Part shown: positions 40,103 to 56,248 of the stretch, piece after piece
How positions within the stretch are numbered: position 1 is the first letter of the stretch
How the letters are laid out: each line of letters opens with the position of its first letter
Origin: Lama glama
Lineage: Eukaryota
Assembly (NCBI GenBank): GCA_028534125.1
Contig: CM052826.1
Coordinates: forward strand, 19,530,001 to 19,594,000
Direction: 5' to 3'
Length of the DNA stretch: 64,000 nucleotides
Translations under genes and position numbers: made by a program
Notes under the pieces: model-generated
The model's database searches: none
What the model was told of the DNA's origin: nothing
The model's input: the letters and a program-made list of their open reading frames with translations, nothing else

Positions 40103-40519
40103 CCTCCACCTCGCATCAAAATGATATGGTTTTTTTAATTAATGAGTTCTTAACCATATTAATGATAATCAAAAGAGAACAGTTTTTCAATTCCAGCAGC
40201 CCTTAAGTGTGAAAAATCTGTCTTCCCCTCACTCAAAAATTCCTGTCCCCCTCCCCAGTATGTTAATGTCTCCTTCTAATGGTAAACTTTGCATATAAAA
40301 GCAGGCTGGTACATAGATAGAAATACATTGCATATAAAGTCTATGCTTGCTGAGAACTTAACACCTCTTGAATGGTTAAATAATCTTTTATAGAGATCTG
40401 AGGTCAAAGATCCACTTTACAGTCCCCACAATAATCCGCCCTCCAAACAAACACCGGTGATCAGATGGTGTACCTCCTCCTGCCAAAAATTGAGTGGCTA
40501 GAATAGAGACCACACTTCT

Positions 40520-41900: not shown

Positions 41901-44900
41901 CGGGTAGATAATCTCCGTCCTCCAACAACCCACTTGGCCACTTCTGGCCCCTCCAGCATCTTCCTAGCTGCGCCCCTGCTCAAAGCCCCGCCTTTACCCC
42001 GCCTACTGAGCCACGCCCTTGCCTGGTAGGGGGCCTCCCACCTTTCCAAGTTAGGACCGAAGGCGCGCTTCTTTCATATGGGTAATTCCTGGAAAAGTAC
42101 CTCCTATATTTGCGACACCTCCCAGCTCCCTCCCAGAGGATGGGGACAGAGGAGGTGGGAGTTCAATCCATCCTCACTCCCTTCTTTCCATTGATGGTGA
42201 CTCCTTAGGATGGGGGCTGACTGGGTGATATCTCTGGGTCATTTGCTGCTTCAGGAATGTCCAGTGGTCTTGGTGGGGTGGAGGGGTTTCCATGGCTGGC
42301 CCCGGCAGGCCCTGGGCCCAAAGGGTTTCTCCCTACCTTTTTCCTTCCACCAGGAGGAGAAACCCTTGGGGCCCAGCCCGAACATGCCGGCCACTGCAGA
42401 GCCCAGCTCCAGTGAGACCGACAAGGAGGTGGTATCCCCAGTTGTGGCTGCTGTAGCCACCTCCTCTTCCATGGGGGAGGAGCCAGGCTCAGACCGGGCA
42501 GCCACACCCCCGGTGTGGGAACGTGGAGGGCCTGGAGGGACCCAGCAGGGTGCCTCTCCAGCCCCAGACAGTGGCCATCCTGGCTCTGGACCCAGCCTTG
42601 GCCTGACCAGCACAGTCTCCGGGACCAGCGAAGACCTGCGGCCTCCCAGACGACGCCCACCACCAGGTGACCTGTGATGGGGCCTTCTGGGGGAGCACAG
42701 GCCCTGGAACAATAGAAGTGAAGAATATAGAGTATCTCCAAACTTGGGACCCATCTAGAGGGAATCACCACTTACTGAGCACCAAATGTATGCCAGGCTG
42801 TGGTTACAGTGAAGAACCAGGCCAACTCTGCCCCTACCCTCTGGTGGGGGAGGCAGAGGGTAAAGGCCCCAGTAGGAAACCATAGGGTAATTCCAGCCCC
42901 ATATATGTCTCTCTGGGGCAGAGTCCTGGACAGTATGGGTGGAGAAGGGACAGTGACCCCCCCCCCTTCTGTGAATCCTGCAGGGAAGCAGATACCCTGT
43001 TCCAGCCCTGGCTGCTGCCTCAGTTTCCCCAGCGTTCGAGACCTGGCACAGCATCTGCGTACCCACTGCCCACCTACACAGTCCCTGGAAGGTAGGGCCA
43101 GGGTAGGTGGTCAGGGTGGGAGGCAGGTTAGAGTGGGAGGCAGGCAGAGCCTCCAGGCCAGTCTTTGCCACCCCCTCCACTCCTCTGTCCTTCATCCCTG
43201 CTCTGCCAGGCAAACTCTTCCGCTGTTCGGCCCTGAGCTGCACCGAGACTTTCCCCAGCATGCAGGAACTGGTGGCACACGGCAAGCTGCACTACAAACC
43301 CAATCGCTACTTCAAGTGAGACCCCGTCCACCCCGCCCTCTGCTGGTGCTTGGTAACCAGACTCCAGGCAGCTCCCCCCACCACTGATTTTACAGTCACT
43401 ATCTGGGGTCCGGGCTTTTCTCCCTAGTCAAGGGGGTTGTGTCTGGGAGTGGGCGTGACCTAGGGCAAGCCTTGCCCTTAGCTGCCCGGAAGAGAGACTG
43501 GTTGCTAGAGCAAGTTCCGGGGACCCGGAGGGCAGGGCTTGGAAAGGGGAGGGGCATACATGGCGTGGCTCCGCTAAGTCCCTGTGTCTTGCAAGATTAA
43601 AAACTGACCACCTAAGTCAGAATTAAGGCTTCCTTCCTCATCTTCCCGGGTCTGCGACCAGGAGGGGTCCGGAATGGTTGCGACCACAGTAGGGGGGCGT
43701 TTAGGGCAAGCTCCTCCCCCGCATGTGGGGAATCTGTTATTTGGACCCAGGCACCCTTACCACCCTCGAGCAGCGGCTACCCAGGTTACAATGGATAGGC
43801 CCCTTCCTTGCACCCTAGGAGACCCAGCCTAGCCCTGTGCTGCCCCCAGGTGCGAGAACTGCCTCCTGCGCTTCCGCACTCACCGCTCGCTCTTCAAACA
43901 TCTGCATGTTTGCGCTGAGCATGCGCAGAGCCCAGCCCCACCGCCACCCCCCGCCCTCGACAAGGAGCCACCGGCGCCCGATCGCCCACCGGAGTCCGAC
44001 CCTGCGTCGGCGCCGGGCCTGTCGTTTCCGCTGCTCGAGCCGTTCACGACTCCTGCTCCTGCCCCCACCGGGCCCTTCCTGCCCTACTTGAACCCCGCGT
44101 CCTTTGGCCTAAGCCCCCCACGCCTGCGCCCCTTCCTGGCCGCCGCTCCCGTGCCGCCCGCCTCCAGCGCTGCGGTCTGGAAAAAGAGCCACGGTGAGTG
44201 TGGGGGCAGGGCCGCCTGAAGAGTGGGCGGGGCTCAGTCTGACTTATGACCTTGACCCGCCTATTTACCGCAGGTGCAGGCGGCAGCCCGCGAAGACCCC
44301 AGGGCGGCTCCGACGCGCCTTCAGGTGCGTTCAGGTGACCACCAGGGAGGGTGGAGGGGATTTCTTTCCTGCGCCCTGCGGGGCCCAGAGGATGCGGGGA
44401 GGCAGCAGTGCCCACTCCCTTCCCAGGTGGCCAGAAATGTCACCCCCGAAATACAGGATTTTGCCTTAAAAGTTACTGGCCCCTGCTCCTTCATCTGCGC
44501 CGGCGTTTCCGTGAAAAACTCGCGCCCGGTTCCCGAGTCCCTCCCCTATGGTGGTTCAGGGGATGGGAAAGGGGAACGCGGATAAGTCATGTTTAGTGCC
44601 CTCCAATACAGGGGGAAATCAGCCAGGCCAGACCCTCGGCGTCCGCGAGCTGATGGGGAGGCGGGGAAAGGTCTGACCGCCCTCGCGCACGTCCACCGTC
44701 CTCGGGGGTGGATGGGTCCTCAGGGCTGAGGTCNNNNNNNNNNNNNNNNNNNNNNNNNNNNNNNNNNNNNNNNNNNNNNNNNNNNNNNNNNNNNNNNNNN
44801 NNNNNNNNNNNNNNNNNNNNNNNNNNNNNNNNNNNNNNNNNNNNNNNNNNNNNNNNNNNNNNNNNNNNNNNNNGACCACCGCCCCATCGCCCCCTCGACC

Positions 44901-45104
44901 CCGGCGCCCGGGCAGCCGCGCCCCGACGCGCCGGCGGGTAAGGCCCGGGAGCGCGCCGGCGGGGAGGGCAGGGGCCCAGAGGCGAGGGGCGGGGCCGAGG
45001 CTCAGGCGCCCCCTCCTCTGCCCCACCCAGACCTCGTCCCGCTGGCACCCCAGATGTCGCAGCTGCTGTCAGAGGGGGAGTGTCCGGTTTTCTCGCCGCT
45101 CTGA
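41633..45104 (+). CDS. ZNF414: Zinc finger protein 414 (C2H2)
   Basis: Exons 41633-41635 (ATG), 42354-42666, 42984-43091, 43210-43315, 43850-44193, then 44274-44338 for the short isoform (TGA, 312 aa). The long isoform uses 44274-44324, an exon partly in gap 44734-44873 that ends at 44937, and 45031-45104 (...EGECPVFSPL*). Fingers: CSSPGC..HLRTH, CSALSC..HGKLH, CENC..HLHVC. AATAAA at 45193-45198. Confidence 0.95.
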
Positions 45105-45603
45105 ACCCAGCCGCGTTGGTGGGGGTGGGAATGTGGGGTGTGGGTAGTTTTGTAATTTTAGGGGGGTCTCAGATGGTCGGAGTGGGGTACACAATAAAGG
45201 AGGCAGATGAGCCAGCCGGTGCTGTGTCTGCGTCCCTCGCCCCTCCAGTGCACAGTGAGAAGGCCAATCTGGCACTCCTGGGGCACTCCCACTGGGGGAG
45301 GGGAAAGGCCTCCCTCACAGCCCACCAGTGTCCCATGCACATCCCCTGTCACCTGAATGCTAGAACAGCTGTAGGTGGCCCTTTGTCCTGTCCCACCACT
45401 TTCAGAAGCCAGATAAGATGGAAGTTTTCCTGGTTTATTTAAAAAGCCCCAGGAGTTGGGAGCTGGCCCTGTTGGAGCACACTGCTCCCCTATCCTGAGG
45501 CCAGTGCTGACCCTCAAGGAGGTGACAGGGTGGGAGGCAGTCCTAGCAGTGGAAGGGCAGTGCCAGGGCCCCCAGGGCTGGGCACTCCGTGGCAGGCTGG
45601 TGT

Positions 45604-47994
45604 TCAGGCTGCATCGTCATCCTCCTATCTGACCTCTGGACTCTGTCTTCGGCTGCCCACTTCCCCTTCTCCCCCTGCCCCAGCTCTGAGGAGGAGGGTG
45701 GGTCAAGGCCAGCCCTGGAGAGCCTGGGACCCTCCCGCCTCACCTTTCCCCCATATACATCCTCTTCCTTTCCTTTGTGGGAAGTCAAACTTGGGCCAGG
45801 GTTCAAAATCTGGTGCCACACTGCTGTCACCAGAACCCGTGGGTCAGCCCAGCTGGGTACGGAAATTATTGGCAGCCACACTTCAGAGTTGGGTTTTACC
45901 TCCTGCATCTTGCTCCTCTCCAGCCCTGTGGTCCCCTAGCCCAGGCCTCTAACCTCTCCCCTGCCCAGAGCACCAGAGGCAACCCCTCCTGCCTTCCCTC
46001 CCAGCCTGAACGCCCCTGGAAACAGGGGTCTCCTCTGATTGTGCCCCTCCCCTGCCCAGTACCCTTCAATAGCTCCCCATAGCTCTCTGGATGAAGATCC
46101 TATTGTCCTAGTAGCCCGCAAGGCCCCATCTTAAACCTCTGTACCTCCTCCTAGGGCCATACTCACCACTTCCCTCTCTCCATCCGGTGAGCAAAAACCC
46201 CAGGACCAGGTCCCCAGCCCCACAGAACCCTGTTTCACTCCTTACCTCCAGTCCAGCTTCTGAGTCCTCATCAGAGTTGTCCTCTGTCACCTCTTCCTCA
46301 GTATCTGCAGCCAACAAGACACGCGTCACCCCTTGGGCGGAGTCCCCAGGCAGCTCCCTCAATCGCCACCCTCCCATCTTCTTCCTGCTCCCCTCATCAC
46401 CCCGACCAGTCCTCCTTGGAATCTTCGTTCCCCAGCGTGTTGGGCTCAGAGCTGGGCAGTCCCCAGCATCGAAGCCATCCAGGTAGCCGAGCTGGGGTAA
46501 TGGCTCAAACACCTGTGCAGCTAGTCCCACTAGTGCAGCTGCTGTGTCTCCTTGAAGTCGAACAGTTCCAGGTTCCGAAGGCCCTGCAGTTTCTCCTGGG
46601 AAGGGCAGTAAGGGAGATTGGGGCACCCGTAGGACCTGGCCCACCTGGACCCCACTGCCTGCGGCCTCACAAGGGGCCTCAGGGCTTCAGTGTCCTGGAT
46701 GGGGTCACAGCTGAGGCTCAGGTGGCCCAGGCTGGGTGTCCACTCCTCCAGCACCTCCAGGCCCCAACTCAGGCGGCTGTCACTCAGCACCAACTGTGGG
46801 GCATTCCCAGATGGGCCATGAGGGCACCCTGGGGCTCCAGGGCCTCCTGAGCTCCCCCTTCTCAGCCAGAAGCTTTGGAACCACCACTCTGTGATTGCGG
46901 GAGAGTTGAAACCTCTCTGCATCTCATTTTCCTAGTCCTTAAAATGGGTGTCAGGATGCTTGCCCTTTGGAGTTCTTGTGAGGATTCAGAGGGGAGGCGG
47001 CTTGGGAAATGTTTGCAAGTGGTTCCCAGCCCTCCTGCCACCAAGCCTGTGGCTGCCTGGGACCCTCGCAAGAACGTGGGGAGGAGGTAGGTCCAGGGGC
47101 CCCTTTTTACAGACAGAGAAGGTGAGGCCAGGAGGTATACTATGCACCCTGACTCTAGCCAGGCCCAGTTCCAAGTTACTCTGATTCTACACCACCCAGG
47201 AAGCTGGGCAGTTACCACTGATGAGAAAAGCCAGGCAGTGAGGCCCAAAGGGCACTGTCCCCTTTTCCTGCACTCCCAAGGCCCCAGACACCCTGGGAAA
47301 TATGCCCCTAAGCCCACCCTTCCATGCATCTCCAGGGACAAGGCTTGGTGTTCCATCTCCAGGGCACCAGAGTCCCGCAACCCCCAGTTTTCCCCATCAA
47401 GCCCCCTCATTCAGCCACCTCCACATCCAGACAGTGCCACTTCCTAGTCTGTCAGGATCTTTCCAGAGAAACCCAGAACCACCATCTTTCTTGGCCCAGA
47501 TACCTCCCCCGAATCCCATCACCCATGTAGACACAACAGCCCCTTCCATGGGTCCACAGTCCCTCCCAATCCCTGCACTGCCCTCTGGAGCAAGCTGAAG
47601 TTGCCCTGAGACCTAGGGTATTGGGTCACTCCAAAAACTGCCTCCTGTCCTCACCCACTCCCAAGTCACATCCAACCTTTGCTTGCCTGGGAAGCCTTAC
47701 TGCTCCCAGTGCCCTTTCTGGGCTCCTGCAGCCCCTGACTTCCCTCTGGTCAACCAGGCTGTGACCCCACATGGGTACCCCCCCTCCCACCCCCAGCTCC
47801 GGGATGCCTGAAAGCAGTGTCCTTTCTTGGCTCAGCCCAGCAGAGGGCGCACAGGAGTGTCAGTCTGAAGGGAGAGTGAACAAGGGCCCAGGCGTCCACA
47901 CAGACACCAAGCCGGGCAGGTTGGCCAGGGAGTGCAGGTTCACGTTGTCCATGCTCCAGGACACAGACCTGCCATCCCCTGCCTCCCAGGACTC
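45604..47994 (-). pseudogene. Unprocessed (intron-containing) ANP32-family pseudogene, avian-ANP32B/ANP32C-like
   Basis: Exon 2 remnant 47908-47994 (SMDNVNLHSLANLPGL). Exon 3 46671-46793, 123 nt, cag|...|gtgag (LVLSDSRLSWGLEVLEEWTPSLGHLSLSCDPIQDTEALRPL). Exon 4 from 46595 (EKLQGLRNLELFDF, stop and frameshift, then QVFEPLPQLGYLDGFDAGD). Acidic exon 46246-46304 (DTEEEVTEDNSDEDSEAGLE). Last exon from 45685 (GQGEKGKW, with EDDDAA* in a shifted frame). Minus-strand AATAAA at 45434-45439. Confidence 0.88.
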
Positions 47995-48234
47995 CTGTTC
48001 AGAGGGGGATTCACATTTGAGAAAGTGGCCCAGGGTGCATGTCTGTCCATGCTGGGACTGGGACGCACAGGCACGGACTCCCAAATTTCCAAGCTGTGCT
48101 GTAAAGGGGACATACAGGCAGAGTCATTTCCGACTGCTGCCTGTGGCCTTCCTGGCAGAGGCGAATGTAGGGTTCCTGCTGGGAATGCAATGCCCAGCCT
48201 CCTTCCCCGTCTCATCTAGATCTTTCTGGAAACC

Positions 48235-48520
48235 ACCTTGCTACTCGAGGGTACTCTAGGTATGATCCTTGGACCAGTAGAACGTGCATCACCTGGGACG
48301 TTTCAGAATCTGAGGCTCCACCATAGACCTGAGGCACAACCTACACTTTAAGGGGGTCTCAGGGTGATTTGTGGGCACCAGTGCCTCTCAGCTAAATCAG
48401 AATCACCCTGAGGGTGTGAAAGAAATCCCCAGGCTCAGGCCACACCCCAGACCAATTAAGTCAGAATCTTTTTCTAAACTCATCGAGGGATTCAGACGCA
48501 GAGCCAAACGGAGAATCAGG
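48235..48520. mobile_element. MER5-like hAT MITE remnants
   Basis: 'ggaccagtagaacgtgcatcacctggga', 'cagaatcaccctgaggg...caggccacaccccagaccaattaagtcagaatct'. Confidence 0.6.
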
Positions 48521-49399
48521 GCTCTGCACTCTCCCTTCATCTGGGAGCCCGAGATCACTGACCTCCTGGGGACTGAGCCCTGTGGTCAGGGTCAGGGCTC
48601 GCCCTTGTCTGGCCTGGCCTCACATCTTCACAGCGCTGGTCTTGGCCACCACCTTCAGTCCCTCTTCTCTGGCCTTCCAGGTGTCCCGATTTTCCTCCCT
48701 CCTTTGTCCTCTGGGAGCCTGGGGTGTCCTCAGTCTCCCTCCCTCCCTGGGGGACAAGGCCTTGGACACTACCCACCCACCCTCCACCAAATCGGCCATC
48801 CCAGCCGGGCGCACAGCCCATGATATATCTGCCCCTGTAACAGGGAAGTCCTGCTCAGAGCTTGGAATCAAACTGCAGGGAAGTGTTGAAATGAGGAAGG
48901 TGGGTGAGCCAAGAGCCAGCAGAAGGGCCTTCCTTACCTATCACATTTACTCAACTCCTGGGTCTCCTGGCCCAGAGCCATGCTCTGTCCCCACTGAAAA
49001 TTCCCCCTCCTGTGGAGGCCCTGGCTAGAGTTGGCCTTGGCCTGCCTCTGTTGGCAGGAGGTCCTCAGGGGCTGGCCCGAGGCCTCCCTGGAGTCCAAGG
49101 CCAGCACACAGCAGGGCAGGGGCTGGGAGTGAGGGGGACAGTAGCAGAGTCCAGAAACTAGTGCTGACATCCGAGGCACAAAGCACAGATGGGGCGACTG
49201 GCAGGACAGGAACTGAAGCGCCTGACAGGATCTGAGGACAGGCTGGGGCCGTCCCCACCTCCTTTCCTTCCTCCTCTGCCCTCCCTGCTGCACGGCCAGC
49301 AGACCCCACCCTGTGGAGCAGAAGCCACAGTCACTTCCTGAAGGCAGCAGCCCTGGCTCGGGTCCCACTCGGCCCTTGGCCCATCACCCGCCTGCAGCC

Positions 49400-52300
49400 A
49401 TGGTGAGTGAGTCCCCGAGTTCTGGGAGAGGCCTCCACTGGCCCGAGGCAAGGGATGCCAGAGGTGGAAATTGGAGGGCATACTCCAAAAGTGGAGCAAG
49501 TGGAAGAGGGGCAGGAAAGCTGTCTGGCACCGACACAAAGGCCCAGAGGCACCTGGGCCAGGACACACCTCGAGGACAGCTCGGGCTCCAAGGGGCCAGT
49601 GGCCGGCTGAGGCTGTGACTATAAGCGGGACAGGTGGGAATACCCAGATGCCTCCCCTCCCCCAGGTCAGCCTGAACAGCAACCTGGTAACAGGCAGCCA
49701 GGGTGAGCAGCAGGGGCTTCCTGTGGGTGCCAAAGTAGGTCATGCACCTGCTGCCTGCTCCCGACCCCAGTGGTTCCGAAAGGCATGACCTGCTGACCCT
49801 GAGCTGTCTGGCCCTGTGGGTCACCCCGGGGCCGCTGCCCCAACCCACCCGATGGAGGGGCTTTCACAGAAGTGTTTCAGGCCCCAGGCAGGAATCGCCA
49901 CCTTTCTTGTTCTCCGGATGGCGGGGAGAGTGAGGCACAGAGAGAGGCAAAGTCCATGAGGTCCTGCCCTTCCCCTCCCCCAGCCTCCTAGACCCCAAGG
50001 GAAGCCAGGCTTGGGGACCTGTGGCAGGGCCACCTCTGGGGTAATCTGTCGGTCAGAGCAGGCCTGACTTGCACGTCTCCTGTGTCTGTGACCGATGGTG
50101 GCCTGGGGCCAGTCAAGACGGTACCGGGATGGACTGTGTGTGCTTCAGATGGTGCGTGTGCCTGGCCAAGGTTGTGCTTGGGAGCCTGCCTGCCTGTCCT
50201 CGTGGGCAGCCGTGAATGTCATCCGGGTGTCTGGGACTGTGAAACCCTGGCACCCACATATGCCTCCAGGTCTCTGTCTTCTCCGTCTGTGTTTCTGTCT
50301 ACATGAGACTATGACAGTCAGACTGGATGCGACTGAGTATACACCTGTCTTTGTGCCTGGTATATTCTTTAGTTCAACAAATGTTTACTGAGCATCTACG
50401 GCGTGCCAGGCCCTGGGAGGACAGCAATGCATGGGGCTGGGGGAAGGGGCAGTAGAGAGACCCCCAAAACCCAAAACAAAACCATCAAGACACATTTACA
50501 AAACAGTATTAAGGAAAATCATTTGTGTGATACAGGGTGGCAGGTACTGAGAGAAAAATCATGCAGGTAGGGGAGGATGGAGCATACGGGAAGAGGGGTG
50601 GGGGTTTTGTTTTTGTTTTTTTTTAGTAATTAGGGTGGTCTGGGAGGAAGGCTTCTCTGATAAAGACTATGGGAGCAGAGACTTGGAGGAAGAGGAGAGG
50701 AGTTGGGGGAGTGTCCCAGGTAGGTCACGGGCAGAGTAAAGGTCCCTGAATTGGGGAGAGGCAGTAGCGGGGAGGGGGAGGTCGGATCTACCCCCTCAGG
50801 GCCTTCATGACTTGAGCTTTTATTGTTGGGAAATGAAAGAACACTGCCAGATTTTGAGTGGAGGGGCACCATCCAACTCCGAGCTAACAGATCTCTGGCT
50901 GCTGTGAGGGGACAGACCAGGGATCAGGGTGCAGGATGCAGGGGCAAGAGACCCTGGAGGAGCCTTTTACAATCCAGGCAACAGGGGACGAGCCCCTTTG
51001 GCCCAGGACAGTGGTGCAGGAGGGGCTGGAGGATGTTGGAAGGCACCACTGACTGAGGGGTAGGCCAGGTCCTGAGGGGGCGGGTGAGGTTGGGTGAGTC
51101 CAGGCCTAAGCAGGGAGGTCAGAAGGGTGTAATAGTTTACGGGAGCCTGGGACTCATGGGGAGGCTGGGAGTCTTTGGCCAACAGAGAAGAGGGCCAAGG
51201 GCAGAGGCGAGAGAGAGGGTGGGGAAGAGGAGCTCACAGAACGGGAGCTAGGAGAAGCGGGCTATGTGTCTGTGACTGTGTTCGTGTCCCGTGGCCATCT
51301 CTCCAGGACCGCTGTGTGTATGTCCCTGCCTTACTGACTCTGTGTCCCCTAGGGGAGTCATCAGGACTTTCGGAGCCTTCAAGCAAAGTTCCAGGCCTCT
51401 CAGCCTGAGACCAGCGAACTCCCCAAAAAACCCCCGAAGCCCGAGTTCAGCAAACTCAAGAAGTTTCCACAGCCTGGGCTAAGTGAGCACCCCAAGAAGC
51501 CCCCGCAGCCTGAGGTCACCGACCTGCCCAAGAAGCCCTCCAAGCTCGAGCTCAGTGAACTCTGCAGGAAGGCCCCGCAGCTCGAGGCCACTCGGATCCC
51601 CAGGAAGCCCTCGCAGCCTGAGGTCGGCGAGGCCCCTCCGACGGCCTCGCAGCCGGAGCCCAGCGCGCCTGACCAGAAGCCCCCACAGTCTGAGCTCGGC
51701 AACACCCCCAGGCCCTCCGTGGAGCCCAAGTTCAGTGCACGCGCCAAGAAGTTCCAGCAGCCCGAGGCCAGTGTGGCCGCCCCAAAGCCCTTGCAGCCCG
51801 AGTCCAGCACCTTTCCCAAGAAGCACCCCCAGCCTGAGTTCAGTTGGCTCCCCAAAAAGCCCCCACAGCCTCAGGCCGGTGGCCTCCCTAAGAAGTCCCT
51901 GCCGCAGCCCGAGCTCAGTGAGACCCCCGGGGCACTCCCCCCAAAGCCAGAGCCCAGTGAGCCCCACCCCTCCTCCTCACAGCCCAGCTTCAGCACCCTT
52001 CCCAAGAAGCCCCCGCAGCCTGAGTTCAGTGCAAACCTCAGAAAGCCCCCGCAGCCTCGGGTTGGTGGCTTCCCTAAGAAGTCCCTGCCACAGTCCAATT
52101 TCAGCGAGGTCCCTCAGGCACCCAACTCGAAGGCCGAGTCCAGGGACTCCTTGCAGCCTGACCTAAGTGCATTTCCCAGAAAGATCCCACAGCTTCAGCT
52201 GAATGACCTCCCCAAGCCTCTGCAGCCTGAGTTTGGTGACCTCACCAGGACGTCCTCAGAGCCTGAAGTCAACGTGTTTCCCAAGATGCCACAGCAGCCC

Positions 52301-55300
52301 GAATTCAAAGCGCTCTCCAAGAAGCCCCCGCAGCCTGAGCTGGAGCTGGGCGGCCTCCCCAGGACGTCCTCAGAGCCCGAGTTCAACCTGCTCTCCCCGA
52401 AGTTTCCACAGCCTGAGTGCCGGGGGCCTCCCCGCAAATTCTCACAGCCTGAGCCCAGTTCTCTGCCCAGGAAGCACCCACAGGCCGAGTTCCTCAAAGA
52501 CCTCCCTAGAAAGCCCCTACTTCCAGGCTCCGTTTCAGAGAGCTCACTGCCCACCGCAGTGGCAGGCTCCGGTGCTAGGTTCCTGCTCGGCCCGGGGTTG
52601 GGAGCCAGGCAACAGAAATTAGGAGCTCTCACCCGCAGTGAAGGGTCGAGGCTGGGCCTCAGACCTGGCCACCCACCCCGGAGGAGGCCTCTGCCCCCGG
52701 TCAGCAGCCTGGGCCCCCCTCCAGCCAAGCCACCACGGCCCCCGAGCCCCAGGGACATCCAGAGCTTTTGGAGAATCTCAGCAGCAGACACAGGTGGGTC
52801 AGGGCGGCCCAGGCAGAAAGGAACGGGTAGAGGCTCACAGGTAGTGTCTGCCTCCCTGATTCCCCACTGCTCTCATCTCTCCCCAGCTCTGCCAAGGGCC
52901 TCCTCTTCTGCTGGGATCCACGTCCAGGCTCGACACCTTGCAGACATCCCACAGTGAGTGTGGCAAGTCAGGGGGCATGGGCACAGGTCACAGGGCTGAC
53001 GGGCCCTCATTTCAGGTATCCCCACAGGGATGCAGATGAGGTCTACGAGCTGTATGATGACGTGGAGCCCACGGATGACTCCAGCCCCAGCCCCAGGGGC
53101 AGAGGTTTGTTGGTGATGGAGTGGGGCCCTCAGCCAGACCAGGCTGCCAAGGCACCTGGGGAACATTTGTCACCAGGGCATTTTCTGCCACGCTGCTGGT
53201 GTTAGGCCAAGTGACAGTCCATATCCCCGCTGGATTGAAGCAGTGCCAGGACAGAAAGCAGAAAGGGGGGAGGGCCTTTCAGAAAGATCACACCGGCTCC
53301 TGGTAGGTGGAACAGTGTGAGGAAGGGCAGCCCAGAGGCCAACAGCCTGACCACAACCAGGGCAGGTGTGTGGCCCAGGGTGAGACAGAAGGCATGGTGA
53401 GCAGTGGAAGAATCAGGAAGGGCACTTGGCGGTGTACTAACCAGGGATGAGAGTGAGCAAGCACATGACGTGGTCGAAGCCTGGGTTTCGAGCTGGGCAC
53501 CCGTGTGCAGAATAGGGGCATCCCTGAGTAAGGGAGACGAGTCAGGGTCCACCTGAAACCTGTTGTGTTGGGGGTGCCTGAGGGATGTCCAGGTGGGACT
53601 TGGGCCTGAACTCAAGAGGCACCGGCTGGAGACGGGGTGTGGCAGACACCTCACGTCTGCAGTCCCAGCTCCAGGGATAATACATTCACCAACCTGGTGT
53701 GAAAACAAAGCTGGCTCCCATGCCAGCCCCTTCCCGAACGTGCACCACACTCCACCCCTGAGGCGAGGTCATGCCCATCTTACAGACAGACGTGGGCGCC
53801 TGAGAACCAGGAGACCTGCCCCAGCTCACACAGCCAGTACGCAGTGGCCCAGGCCCTCTGCTCCCAGGCAGCTTCCCTGCCCCATCTTGGGAGGGGTCTC
53901 CTGCAGGGGAACCTTTCATCAGGGGTGCCTTTGGGACGCTACCACTCCTTCCTCACCAGCCCACTCCTCAGAGTCCGCTGCCTCTACAGCTGTTGCTCCC
54001 ACCTGCGCTCTGCTTCTCCCAGCCTTTCCCCAGGGGCTGCTTGCAACACTCCTGTTAGCACAGCACTTCCTGACGGGGCCCCTCCTGCTTCCGCTCCAGT
54101 GAGACACTGTGGCTTGGGTCTGGGGGCCACTCCTGGGGATGTGAACGTGGGGAGCACTTCTGGCCACTGCACTTCCAGCAGCCTTGCAAGCAAGGCCCAC
54201 CCTTTCCCTTCCCCCCCACACTGCCAGGAAGCCAGGCCACAGGAACACCAGGGTCTGCTCCACACTGCCGCACCCAGGGCTGTGCTCCAACGGCTGTGGC
54301 AGGTTTATAGGGTCCCTGGGGTAAAGCCAAGACTGCTCCCAGCTGAGTGACCATCTCCTGCCTGGGCGGCCTCTGGGAGAGGCAGGGGGAGCTTGAGGGA
54401 ATGTTCTGGGTGGGGCTGTGGTTGGCACTGTTATCCAAGCACCAGGCTGATGCTAGAGGCAAGCTTAGTGTCTGAAGGCGCAGGTAAGTGTCACCCTTCA
54501 GTGGGCAGCTTGACAGGAGGTTCTGCTAACCCAAAATGTCCAGAGTAGCACTTCAGGTCCCTCAGGAACGACTGCGAAAAGCTGGGGGTTTCAGCTTCTG
54601 GATCCTTCACTCACCTGGTTTTCATGAGGCTCTTGCTGAAAGCCAAACCCTTGGCGAGCAGGACTCAGACCTGGAAAGCTGGTCATTTGCCAGGAAGTCG
54701 GCCCTCACCTGGGAGCCCCCCCAAGTCCAGAGAACCTCATCACCAGCAAGGCCAGTCCAAGCACTCCATTCCAACAGCCCTTCTCAGAGGCGGACTTTGT
54801 TTGCCTTGGAAATGCTTTTCTTTGCCTTATTTTTTGACTTAAATCTCCTTTCAGTTCCCAGAACCTAACCTCTCTCTGAGGCAGGGGTGAAATGGCCTCA
54901 AAAGCTTAACAAATAAATCCTGCCTCTTAAACAGCTGAGTGACCTTGGGCAGGTTGCCTCACCTCTCTGAACCTTTATTTCCTACTCAGCGAGGTGGGAT
55001 GACCGTCATCAATAAAGCTGTTGTGAGTGTTGAAATGAGTGATAAACAGTTTCCGCCATGCCGAGTACGTGGCAGGAGTTGAGAAATGAAAGGGAATCCA
55101 CTAGAACTCACAACCCACGAGAAAGGCCCAGGGAGGTGGGGAGGGGACCGACGTCCTGAGAACTGACACAGGGAAGATCAAGCCACCAGGTCCAGAGGCC
55201 GAACCAACAGTCCCTGCCCTAACATGCCATTCTGACCGCCCCAGATGAAGTGCCATCTCCCCAGCAACCCCCCAGGAGGCCACCACAAGACCCAGAGCTC

Positions 55301-56248
55301 AGGTACCACAGGGCAAAGGGCATGGGACAGGGTGGGGCTGAGCTCCGGGAGGACAAGAAAAGGGGATCCCCAAGAAGCATGCCTTGCTCATGAGCACCCA
55401 ATTCCTTGGGGGGCTCAGGAAGGAGAAGGCCCTCCAGCCACAGCAGTTGATGCCCACAGACCTGAAGACCCTGAAGCAGATCCGGAAGGCAGAGAAAGCT
55501 GAGAGAGAGTTCCGGAAGAAGTTCAAGGTATGAACACCAAGCAGAGCAAGAGTCCCTGGGAGGGTTGGGCTTGACCAAAGCCCCACAGATTCCATCCTCA
55601 GAGAGAAGCCAGGGGTTCTTGGGGTGGCAGCAGAGGCAAAAACTCTTAACCAATGTCTCCCTCCCCAGTTTGAGGGGGAGATCGTGATTCAGACAAGGAT
55701 GATGATCGACCCCAATGCCAAGACTCGTCGTGCGGGTGGCAAGCATCTGGGGATTCGGCGTGGGGAGATCCTGGAGGTGATTGAGTTCACCAACAAGGAG
55801 GAGATGCTATGCCGGGACACCAAGGGCAAGTGTGAGTGAGCCCGGCCCGGGCAGCCCTGGGGAGATGGGCCACCACCATGGAGGGCGGAGAACTCACCCA
55901 CCCCTGCTCTCTTCACAGATGGCTACGTGCCCAGAACAGCTCTCCTGCCCCTGTGAGTAATGGCCCTGACTGGGATGGAGGATTGAGGTGGAGGGGTCAT
56001 AGACCAGGGTAACCCTCACTGACCCACCTGTTCTCTCTACCAGGGAAACAGAGGTGTACGATGACGTCGGTTTCTGGGGTATGTAGACTGGACGGGTGGA
56101 CTGGACGGATGACAGTGCCTTGGGAGGGGGAGGACCCAGCCCCACTGCCCCAGGGGCTGCTGTCTATCTGTTTATGGGAAAAGGGGTCAGTGTAGTCACT
56201 TCCTCAGCAGATCCTCAGGAGAGCCAAGCATTCCCCCGGGGACAATAA
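49400..56248 (+). CDS. PRAM1: PML-RARA-regulated adaptor molecule 1 (FYB/ADAP family: Pro-rich repeats, YDDV motifs, helically extended SH3), 674 aa
   Basis: Exons 49400-49402 (ATG), 51353-52793, 52887-52953, 53028-53104 (YELYDDV), 55245-55302, 55419-55527, 55669-55831, 55919-55952, 56044-56078 (VYDDV), 56211-56248 (TAA). Total 2025 nt, in frame. ETS motif CACTTCCTG at 49332-49340. Confidence 0.96.

Follow-up and report, generated by a model that had tools for sequence, protein, structure and literature searches.

An intron-containing ANP32 relic beside ZNF414 in the llama genome, the probable remains of a paralogue lost by placental mammals

Within a 64,000-nucleotide stretch of the llama (Lama glama) genome (GenBank assembly GCA_028534125.1, contig CM052826.1, positions 19,530,001 to 19,594,000 of the forward strand; hereafter the window, in whose numbering all coordinates are given), we found the decayed remains of a gene of the ANP32 family. 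The relic occupies ~45.4–48.0 kb on the minus strand, as located by tblastn and by the sequence itself. We consider it very probably a unitary pseudogene, what is left in place of an ANP32 paralogue that placentals have lost; birds and reptiles retain this paralogue under the name 'ANP32B', and Xenopus under that of ANP32C.

The locus

Gene order in the window was read from long open reading frames (ORFs) and confirmed by Pfam. The plus strand carries ADAMTS-type TSP1 repeats, MYO1F (myosin head at ~17.8 kb, SH3 domain at ~37.6–37.8 kb), a ZNF414-type gene whose zf-C2H2_8 finger lies at 43833–44216 (Pfam E 2e-16) and which has a CpG island by it at 41.3–41.9 kb, and a PRAM1-type gene with a proline-rich exon of 534 amino acids (51353–52954) followed by an hSH3 domain (55534–55836, Pfam E 1.6e-18); an RRM of HNRNPM type is on the minus strand. 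The relic and the ZNF414-type gene stand tail to tail. The relic is upstream of PRAM1, and MYO1F comes next beyond the ZNF414-type gene. Its placement between ZNF414 and PRAM1 on the minus strand, proposed in an earlier model-made note on the same DNA (the sequence-only reading), is borne out by the Pfam matches on both flanks. Scanning 44900–48430 against Rfam gave no match, and a tandem-repeat scan of that interval found none. MYO1F is compact here, spanning ~21 kb (17.8–38.6 kb) with the myosin head exon at ~17.8 kb and the SH3 exon at ~37.7 kb. Eight masked runs of N, 130–500 nucleotides each, are scattered over the window.

A colinear match to ANP32

When bird ANP32B (Heliornis fulica NXP46026.1) was compared with the window by tblastn, a search of the kind asked for by the sequence-only reading, it gave a significant match in two colinear segments (46796–46533 and 46533–46258) with a summed E value of 3.4e-13, and an exon-2 piece besides. 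ANP32A queries found the same site (E 7–8e-11), and full-length ANP32 queries found no other place in the window below E ~0.4. Exon 3 alone, 41 amino acids long, aligned with residues 70–109 of ANP32A at E 5.7e-6 among 177,635 PDB sequences, and the significant matches in that search were all ANP32A or ANP32B. The sequence of the leucine-rich repeat (LRR) domain, including the LRR cap (LPQLxYLDG[FY]D in the family), is present in the relic by both tblastn and alignment. Pfam found no family in the single relic pieces, as would be expected of pieces so short and decayed.

The six minus-strand pieces that had been proposed all lie where they were placed, and they can be followed in order. The exon 2 remnant (47908–48015, minus strand) aligns with residues 131–167 of a snake ANP32B over 37 amino acids (40.5% identity, E 0.055, tblastn). 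About 36 of its codons are left: the last 16 are well preserved, and decay is heavy in the 5′ part. The preserved 3′ part, SMDNVNLHSLANLPGL at 47955–47908, is the LRR fragment of the sequence-only reading and is 62.5% identical to bird ANP32B residues 31–46. The last five codons of the exon and its normal donor are not recognizable. Some 1.1 kb further on lies exon 3 (46671–46793, minus strand), 123 nucleotides long and open throughout, with a cag acceptor and a gtgagg donor (cag/TTG...CTT/gtgagg). It encodes the region of LRRs 3–4 and is identical to bird ANP32B at 24/42 positions and to platypus ANP32A at 23/42, in keeping with the predicted identity of about one half to ANP32A.

Intron 3 (46596–46670, minus strand) is 75 nucleotides long, runs from gt to cag in phase 0 and interrupts the reading frame at the EPL/KKL junction of the family, as had been claimed. 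Exon 4 begins normally with EKLQGLRNLELF...; its first part, EKLQGLRNLELFDFKETQQLH (46533–46595, minus strand), has L-H at the equivalents of ANP32A residues 129/130. The predicted LRR cap follows as VFEPLPQLGYLDGFDAGD (46459–46512, minus strand) in frame +2 relative to the exon start, with a weak colinear PDB match to ANP32B 140–161. The acidic tail then begins at 46456 and can be read to 46373 on the same strand as PSSEPNTLGNEDSKEDWSG, two stop codons and GEQEEDG.

The two last exons are less distinct. A candidate acidic exon, (D)TEEEVTEDNSDEDSEAGLE, 59 nucleotides long at 46246–46304 (minus strand), is present with the AG/GT ends that had been described (cag/gtaagg), and the second bird ANP32B segment of the tblastn search reaches into it; it is of low complexity and not significant alone. 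The candidate terminal exon, ELGQGEKGKWAAED (45613–45710, minus strand), reads GEKGKWAAED and then, after a frameshift, EDDD and a stop, colinear with the GEKRKRxxED...DDD of the family. The exon is in the right order and is followed downstream by the poly(A) hexamer AATAAA (45439–45434, minus strand), and its similarity is weak when taken alone (E ~0.85).

Lesions and coding status

The relic cannot encode an ANP32 protein and is dead as a protein-coding unit. In exon 4, an in-frame TAG (46532–46530, minus strand) replaces a conserved Tyr codon, a second in-frame TAG follows at 46523–46521, and next comes a frameshift directly before the cap. A second frameshift, after GFDAGD, leads into the acidic tail, which is itself interrupted by TGA-TGA (46399–46394, minus strand). 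No exon 1 was detectable, the best score for it being 11, below the shuffled-query median of 16. Nor is there a CpG island in the 3 kb upstream of the relic, where the observed/expected ratio is 0.12–0.35 versus 0.85–0.93 at the 5′ end of ZNF414. The second frameshift, the TGA-TGA and the missing exon 1 and CpG island had not been listed in the sequence-only reading. With two TAG codons, two frameshifts, TGA-TGA and no exon 1, the relic lacks the intact ORF of a functional ANP32 member.

In other genomes, ORFs that read through from real ANP32 genes depart from the coding sequence just past ...EPL with a Val (GT) codon; on their return to it, ahead of LELSD as well as ahead of KKL, a Gln (CAG) codon comes first. 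The boundaries of exon 3 and the position of intron 3 in the relic are those of these ORFs. Because its intron positions are the family's own, the relic is not a retrocopy, as the sequence-only reading had argued. An origin as a processed pseudogene is ruled out by the ~1.1 kb between exons 2 and 3 and the 75-nucleotide gt/ag intron between exons 3 and 4. Disablement in place is likewise supported: introns are kept, lesions are present and a functional counterpart exists in birds and snakes.

The same relic in other species

An exhaustive search with the open frame of 130 amino acids that runs from exon 3 through intron 3 into the beginning of exon 4 returned predicted proteins that sit on the same relic. 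One cluster, which includes Camelus ferus EQB78345.1, is 94% identical. Further copies are cetacean-like read-through ORFs, which form a cluster of their own, and those of two more lineages, and RefSeq holds a Phocoena phocoena protein of 123 amino acids, XP_065729904.1 ('ANP32A-like'), which is a spliced product of exons 2, 3 and 4 and ends at the exon-4 stop. All relic rows form one clade in our tree (100/98), in which the porpoise model is the only multi-exon relic row. Exon 3 of the window is identical to that of the camel at 38/41 positions and to a cetacean-like copy at 28/41; exons 3 and 4a of that cetacean-like copy are identical to those of the porpoise model.

Both named entries are gene models on the orthologous relic and, unlike our reading of it, treat it as protein-coding. 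The porpoise model takes in a first exon that is not of ANP32 origin, and its equivalent in the window, at 48644–48721 on the minus strand, matches residues 3–28 of the model (61.5% identity, E 6e-7). The camel entry ('hypothetical protein CB1_000765038') links exon 3 to a short ORF upstream of it and continues through intron 3 into exon 4, corresponding to ~48015–48050 and 46533–46793 in the window. The porpoise model is probably a pseudogene called as coding, with 'A-like' naming the wrong paralogue, and we flag both entries as probable mis-annotations of a pseudogene. The expectation of the sequence-only reading that gene annotation would probably miss the relic therefore does not always hold.

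Which paralogue

Residue comparisons point to the gene that birds call ANP32B. In local alignments every piece scores higher with bird ANP32B than with ANP32A (44/40 for exon 2, 109/103 for exon 3, 68/62 for the LRR cap and 39/38 for a further piece). Nineteen of the covered columns separate bird ANP32B from ANP32A; the relic copies show the B state at nine of these and the A state at two, and the other eight are decayed (sign test, p 0.033). By eye, the relic sides with bird ANP32B against human ANP32B at SDxR, GGLEVL, N/DPI, RT, L-R-x-L and GFDA, and against ANP32E at RT, I/L and A. These comparisons support the earlier claim of a closer resemblance to chicken ANP32B than to mammalian ANP32A or ANP32B. 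At positions 129/130 the relic has L-H, bird ANP32B has I-N, and ANP32A and ANP32B have N-D.

At two diagnostic columns where ANP32A, ANP32B and ANP32E have Lys, the relic copies have R, W or Q, a pattern that would be expected of CpG decay of an ancestral CGG codon. The two Trp codons of exon 3 in the window (SWGLEVLEEWTP) are Gly and Arg in the camel (SGGLEVLEERTP). Across five lineages the Arg column of exon 3 reads R, W, W, Q and W, as though a single CGG codon had undergone CpG decay in parallel.

Protein searches gave mostly ANP32A, and one bird and one snake ANP32B were obtained, the latter a partial sequence from Ophiophagus hannah (ETE61418.1). In this king cobra entry two partial ANP32B-like copies stand one after the other, the first of them diverged (LELTDTHISGG...), and the arrangement may reflect a tandem duplicate or an artefact of assembly or annotation. 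In the maximum-likelihood tree, the relic clade groups with bird ANP32B, snake ANP32B and P0007, an exon-3 ORF of that type, outside the branch that unites ANP32A and ANP32E (85/86), and bird ANP32B is the nearest row that is not a relic.

Location adds to the residue evidence. According to Long et al. (eLife 2019; PMC6548507), avian ANP32B groups with Xenopus ANP32C and with unnamed genes of non-placental mammals; these avian-B-type genes all adjoin ZNF414 and MYO1F; and eutherians have lost the gene, although a tiny piece of an ANP32 gene is left in humans between ZNF414 and MYO1F. The companion eLife Insight speaks of a non-functional pseudogene in placentals. The sequence-only reading was thus right on both the placing of avian ANP32B and Xenopus ANP32C by ZNF414/MYO1F and the placental loss (PMC6548507). 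In the window, the relic has both neighbours (zf-C2H2_8 at 43.8–44.2 kb; myosin head and SH3 at 17.8–37.8 kb). A literature search found no paper that links ANP32 with PRAM1 in this sense.

A second ANP32-like match was also considered, at 40251–40192 on the minus strand, the only such match between MYO1F and ZNF414. This match of 20 amino acids, GGQEFLSEGKTDFSHLRAAG, is to the core of ANP32 exon 3 and recurs with several queries, and it falls in the interval in which Long et al. (PMC6548507) put the human fragment. Its score of 40 is barely above the background scores of 38, 35 and 34, and we rejected it as indistinguishable from chance.

Constraint, timing and expression

We compared the window with its counterparts for traces of selection. 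Against the camel, the exon pieces are identical at 58/62 positions and the translated introns at 66/71 (p 1.0), so the exons are no better kept. The same comparison with the cetacean-like copies gave 43/62 for the exon pieces and 32/71 for the translated introns (p 0.005), a difference to be read with the bias that intron indels bring to an amino-acid comparison. The preservation of exons between camelids and cetacean-like copies could reflect a later loss, or only this indel bias. After its inactivation the relic would have drifted neutrally.

The lesions themselves bear on timing. The first TAG is found in the window, in the camel and in the porpoise model, and closely related cetacean-like copies have a Ser codon in its place; we therefore dropped it as an ancestral lesion of camel and porpoise. 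The frameshift between exons 4a and 4b is in the same phase in the two lineages and would be compatible with a shared lesion.

Transcripts were also considered. Five RNA-sequencing runs from two studies hold 0.29–0.36 of the sampled words of 45400–48700, and the relic interval may thus be transcribed. The contigs that match 45400–48700 are labelled 'reproductive system metagenome'; host transcripts cover part of the interval. At most, we would expect a low-level, possibly spliced, non-coding transcript, and no protein function.

Weighing the alternatives

That the relic derives from ANP32 is clear, and chance is excluded as its source. That GC-rich, leucine-rich open frames happen to resemble LRR proteins might have been offered in explanation of single pieces that show no Pfam family and of terminal and acidic exons that fall short of significance alone, but such a resemblance would have to produce four to six pieces that are colinear, in the right order and on one strand, with a summed E value of 3.4e-13, conserved intron positions and a match specific to ANP32 rather than to other LRR proteins. 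The PDB search with exon 3 and the tblastn search of the window refute it, and we give it practically no weight. A decayed segmental duplicate, copied at the DNA level from mammalian ANP32A, ANP32B or ANP32E and landed here by chance, would account for the matches of the ANP32A queries and for the two diagnostic columns in the ANP32A state, and would sit within what the approximately unbiased (AU) tests allow. It would not account for a location that is that of the avian, frog and marsupial gene, nor for diagnostic columns that stand nine to two for the B state and include RT in E-RT-P, R in L-R-x-L, GFDA and the hydrophobic residue 129. The relic is also old, because its copies in camelids, in cetaceans and in two or more further lineages fall into one clade. 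We hold such a duplicate to be very unlikely.

We infer instead that the relic is the orthologue of the avian ANP32B and frog ANP32C gene, on the basis of the diagnostic residues, of a tree that lends weak support and of synteny from the literature. Several observations weigh against our explanation. The branch that unites the relics with bird and snake ANP32B is weakly supported (79/0). The phylogeny for which the sequence-only reading had called yields a best tree that agrees with its proposal and AU tests that do not reject the relics with ANP32A (p 0.16), with ANP32E (p 0.10) or with a B-type exon 3 (p 0.46). The rows of that tree exclude full-length mammalian ANP32B, ANP32E, Xenopus ANP32C and marsupial proteins, human ANP32B having been compared by eye. 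The synteny of birds, frogs and marsupials was taken from Long et al. (PMC6548507), and the relic is on the side of ZNF414 that faces PRAM1, unlike the published place of the human fragment between ZNF414 and MYO1F. The better preservation of exons against cetacean-like copies and the RNA-sequencing words noted above belong on the same side. The tree agrees without deciding the matter, and the paralogue argument is carried by the residue evidence and the location. On those grounds, together with the introns, the proposed identity with avian ANP32B and Xenopus ANP32C is supported, with the relic in the B state at 9 of 11 informative columns.

Two further readings concern when the gene died and whether it is wholly dead. 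The ANP32C-type gene may not have been lost once in the placental stem, but may have remained functional into the early days of certain orders, here the common ancestor of camelids and cetaceans, and then been disabled independently. This would explain why so much more is left of the relic than of the human trace, why exons are better kept than the intron between camelids and cetaceans, and why the first exon-4 stop is a Ser codon in some cetacean-like copies; we nevertheless rate it as unlikely. If it were true, a copy that is intact or expressed might survive in some living placental, and the spliced porpoise model is a hint of this. Slightly less likely still is that the relic remains in use, transcribed and spliced as a non-coding RNA or as the message for a short, truncated LRR peptide. 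The spliced exon 2-3-4 product of 123 amino acids in the porpoise RefSeq model, the intact splice-site dinucleotides at exon 3, intron 3 and the acidic exon, the five RNA-sequencing runs and the exon preservation between camelids and cetacean-like copies (p 0.005) can all be read in this way. Yet the porpoise start codon has no equivalent here (T-P-Q in the window versus M-S-K in the porpoise), the donor region of exon 2 is altered and there is no CpG island. Translation would stop at 46532–46530, before the LRR cap, to give a product without N-cap, cap or acidic tail; within camelids the exons are kept no better than the introns; and the RNA contigs could come from the ZNF414 3′ untranslated region or from read-through.

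Significance

ANP32 proteins are host factors on which influenza polymerases depend, and the host range of influenza is shaped by the set of ANP32 paralogues that a species has and by residues 129/130. On the pseudogene reading, the relic is a physical confirmation, and a second and much better preserved specimen, of a fourth placental paralogue at the ZNF414 locus, and the lost gene had a hydrophobic residue at 129, as does avian ANP32B (Ile). Its lesions could be used to date the loss across mammalian orders. The sequence-only reading overstated the novelty of this fossil, as a human remnant is already described by Long et al. (PMC6548507), and the known picture is unchanged because the loss and the human trace were published in 2019. 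What is new is how complete the relic is in this genome, and that camelids and cetaceans have it.

Comparison with known ANP32 genes

Human ANP32C and ANP32D are intronless retrocopies related to ANP32A. Like the relic, they derive from ANP32 and are not canonical functional members of the family; the relic differs in having retained introns and in not resembling ANP32A at the diagnostic columns.

The relic also resembles avian and reptilian ANP32B and Xenopus ANP32C, with which it shares the length and boundaries of exon 3 and the order of LRR cap and acidic tail. Residues typical of that clade are kept, namely M in SMxNV, RT in E-RT-P, R in L-R-x-L, GFDA and P in S-D/E-P, and residue 129 is hydrophobic in both (Ile in the bird, Leu in the relic), where ANP32A and ANP32B have Asn. 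Those genes are functional, whereas the relic has stops and frameshifts and has lost exon 1 and its promoter.

The human remnant (PMC6548507) belongs to the same family and the same ZNF414/MYO1F neighbourhood, and leads to the same conclusion of loss in placentals. It was described as a 'short stretch', whereas the relic in the llama extends from exon 2 to the terminal exon, with splice sites, a poly(A) signal and orthologous copies in cetaceans.

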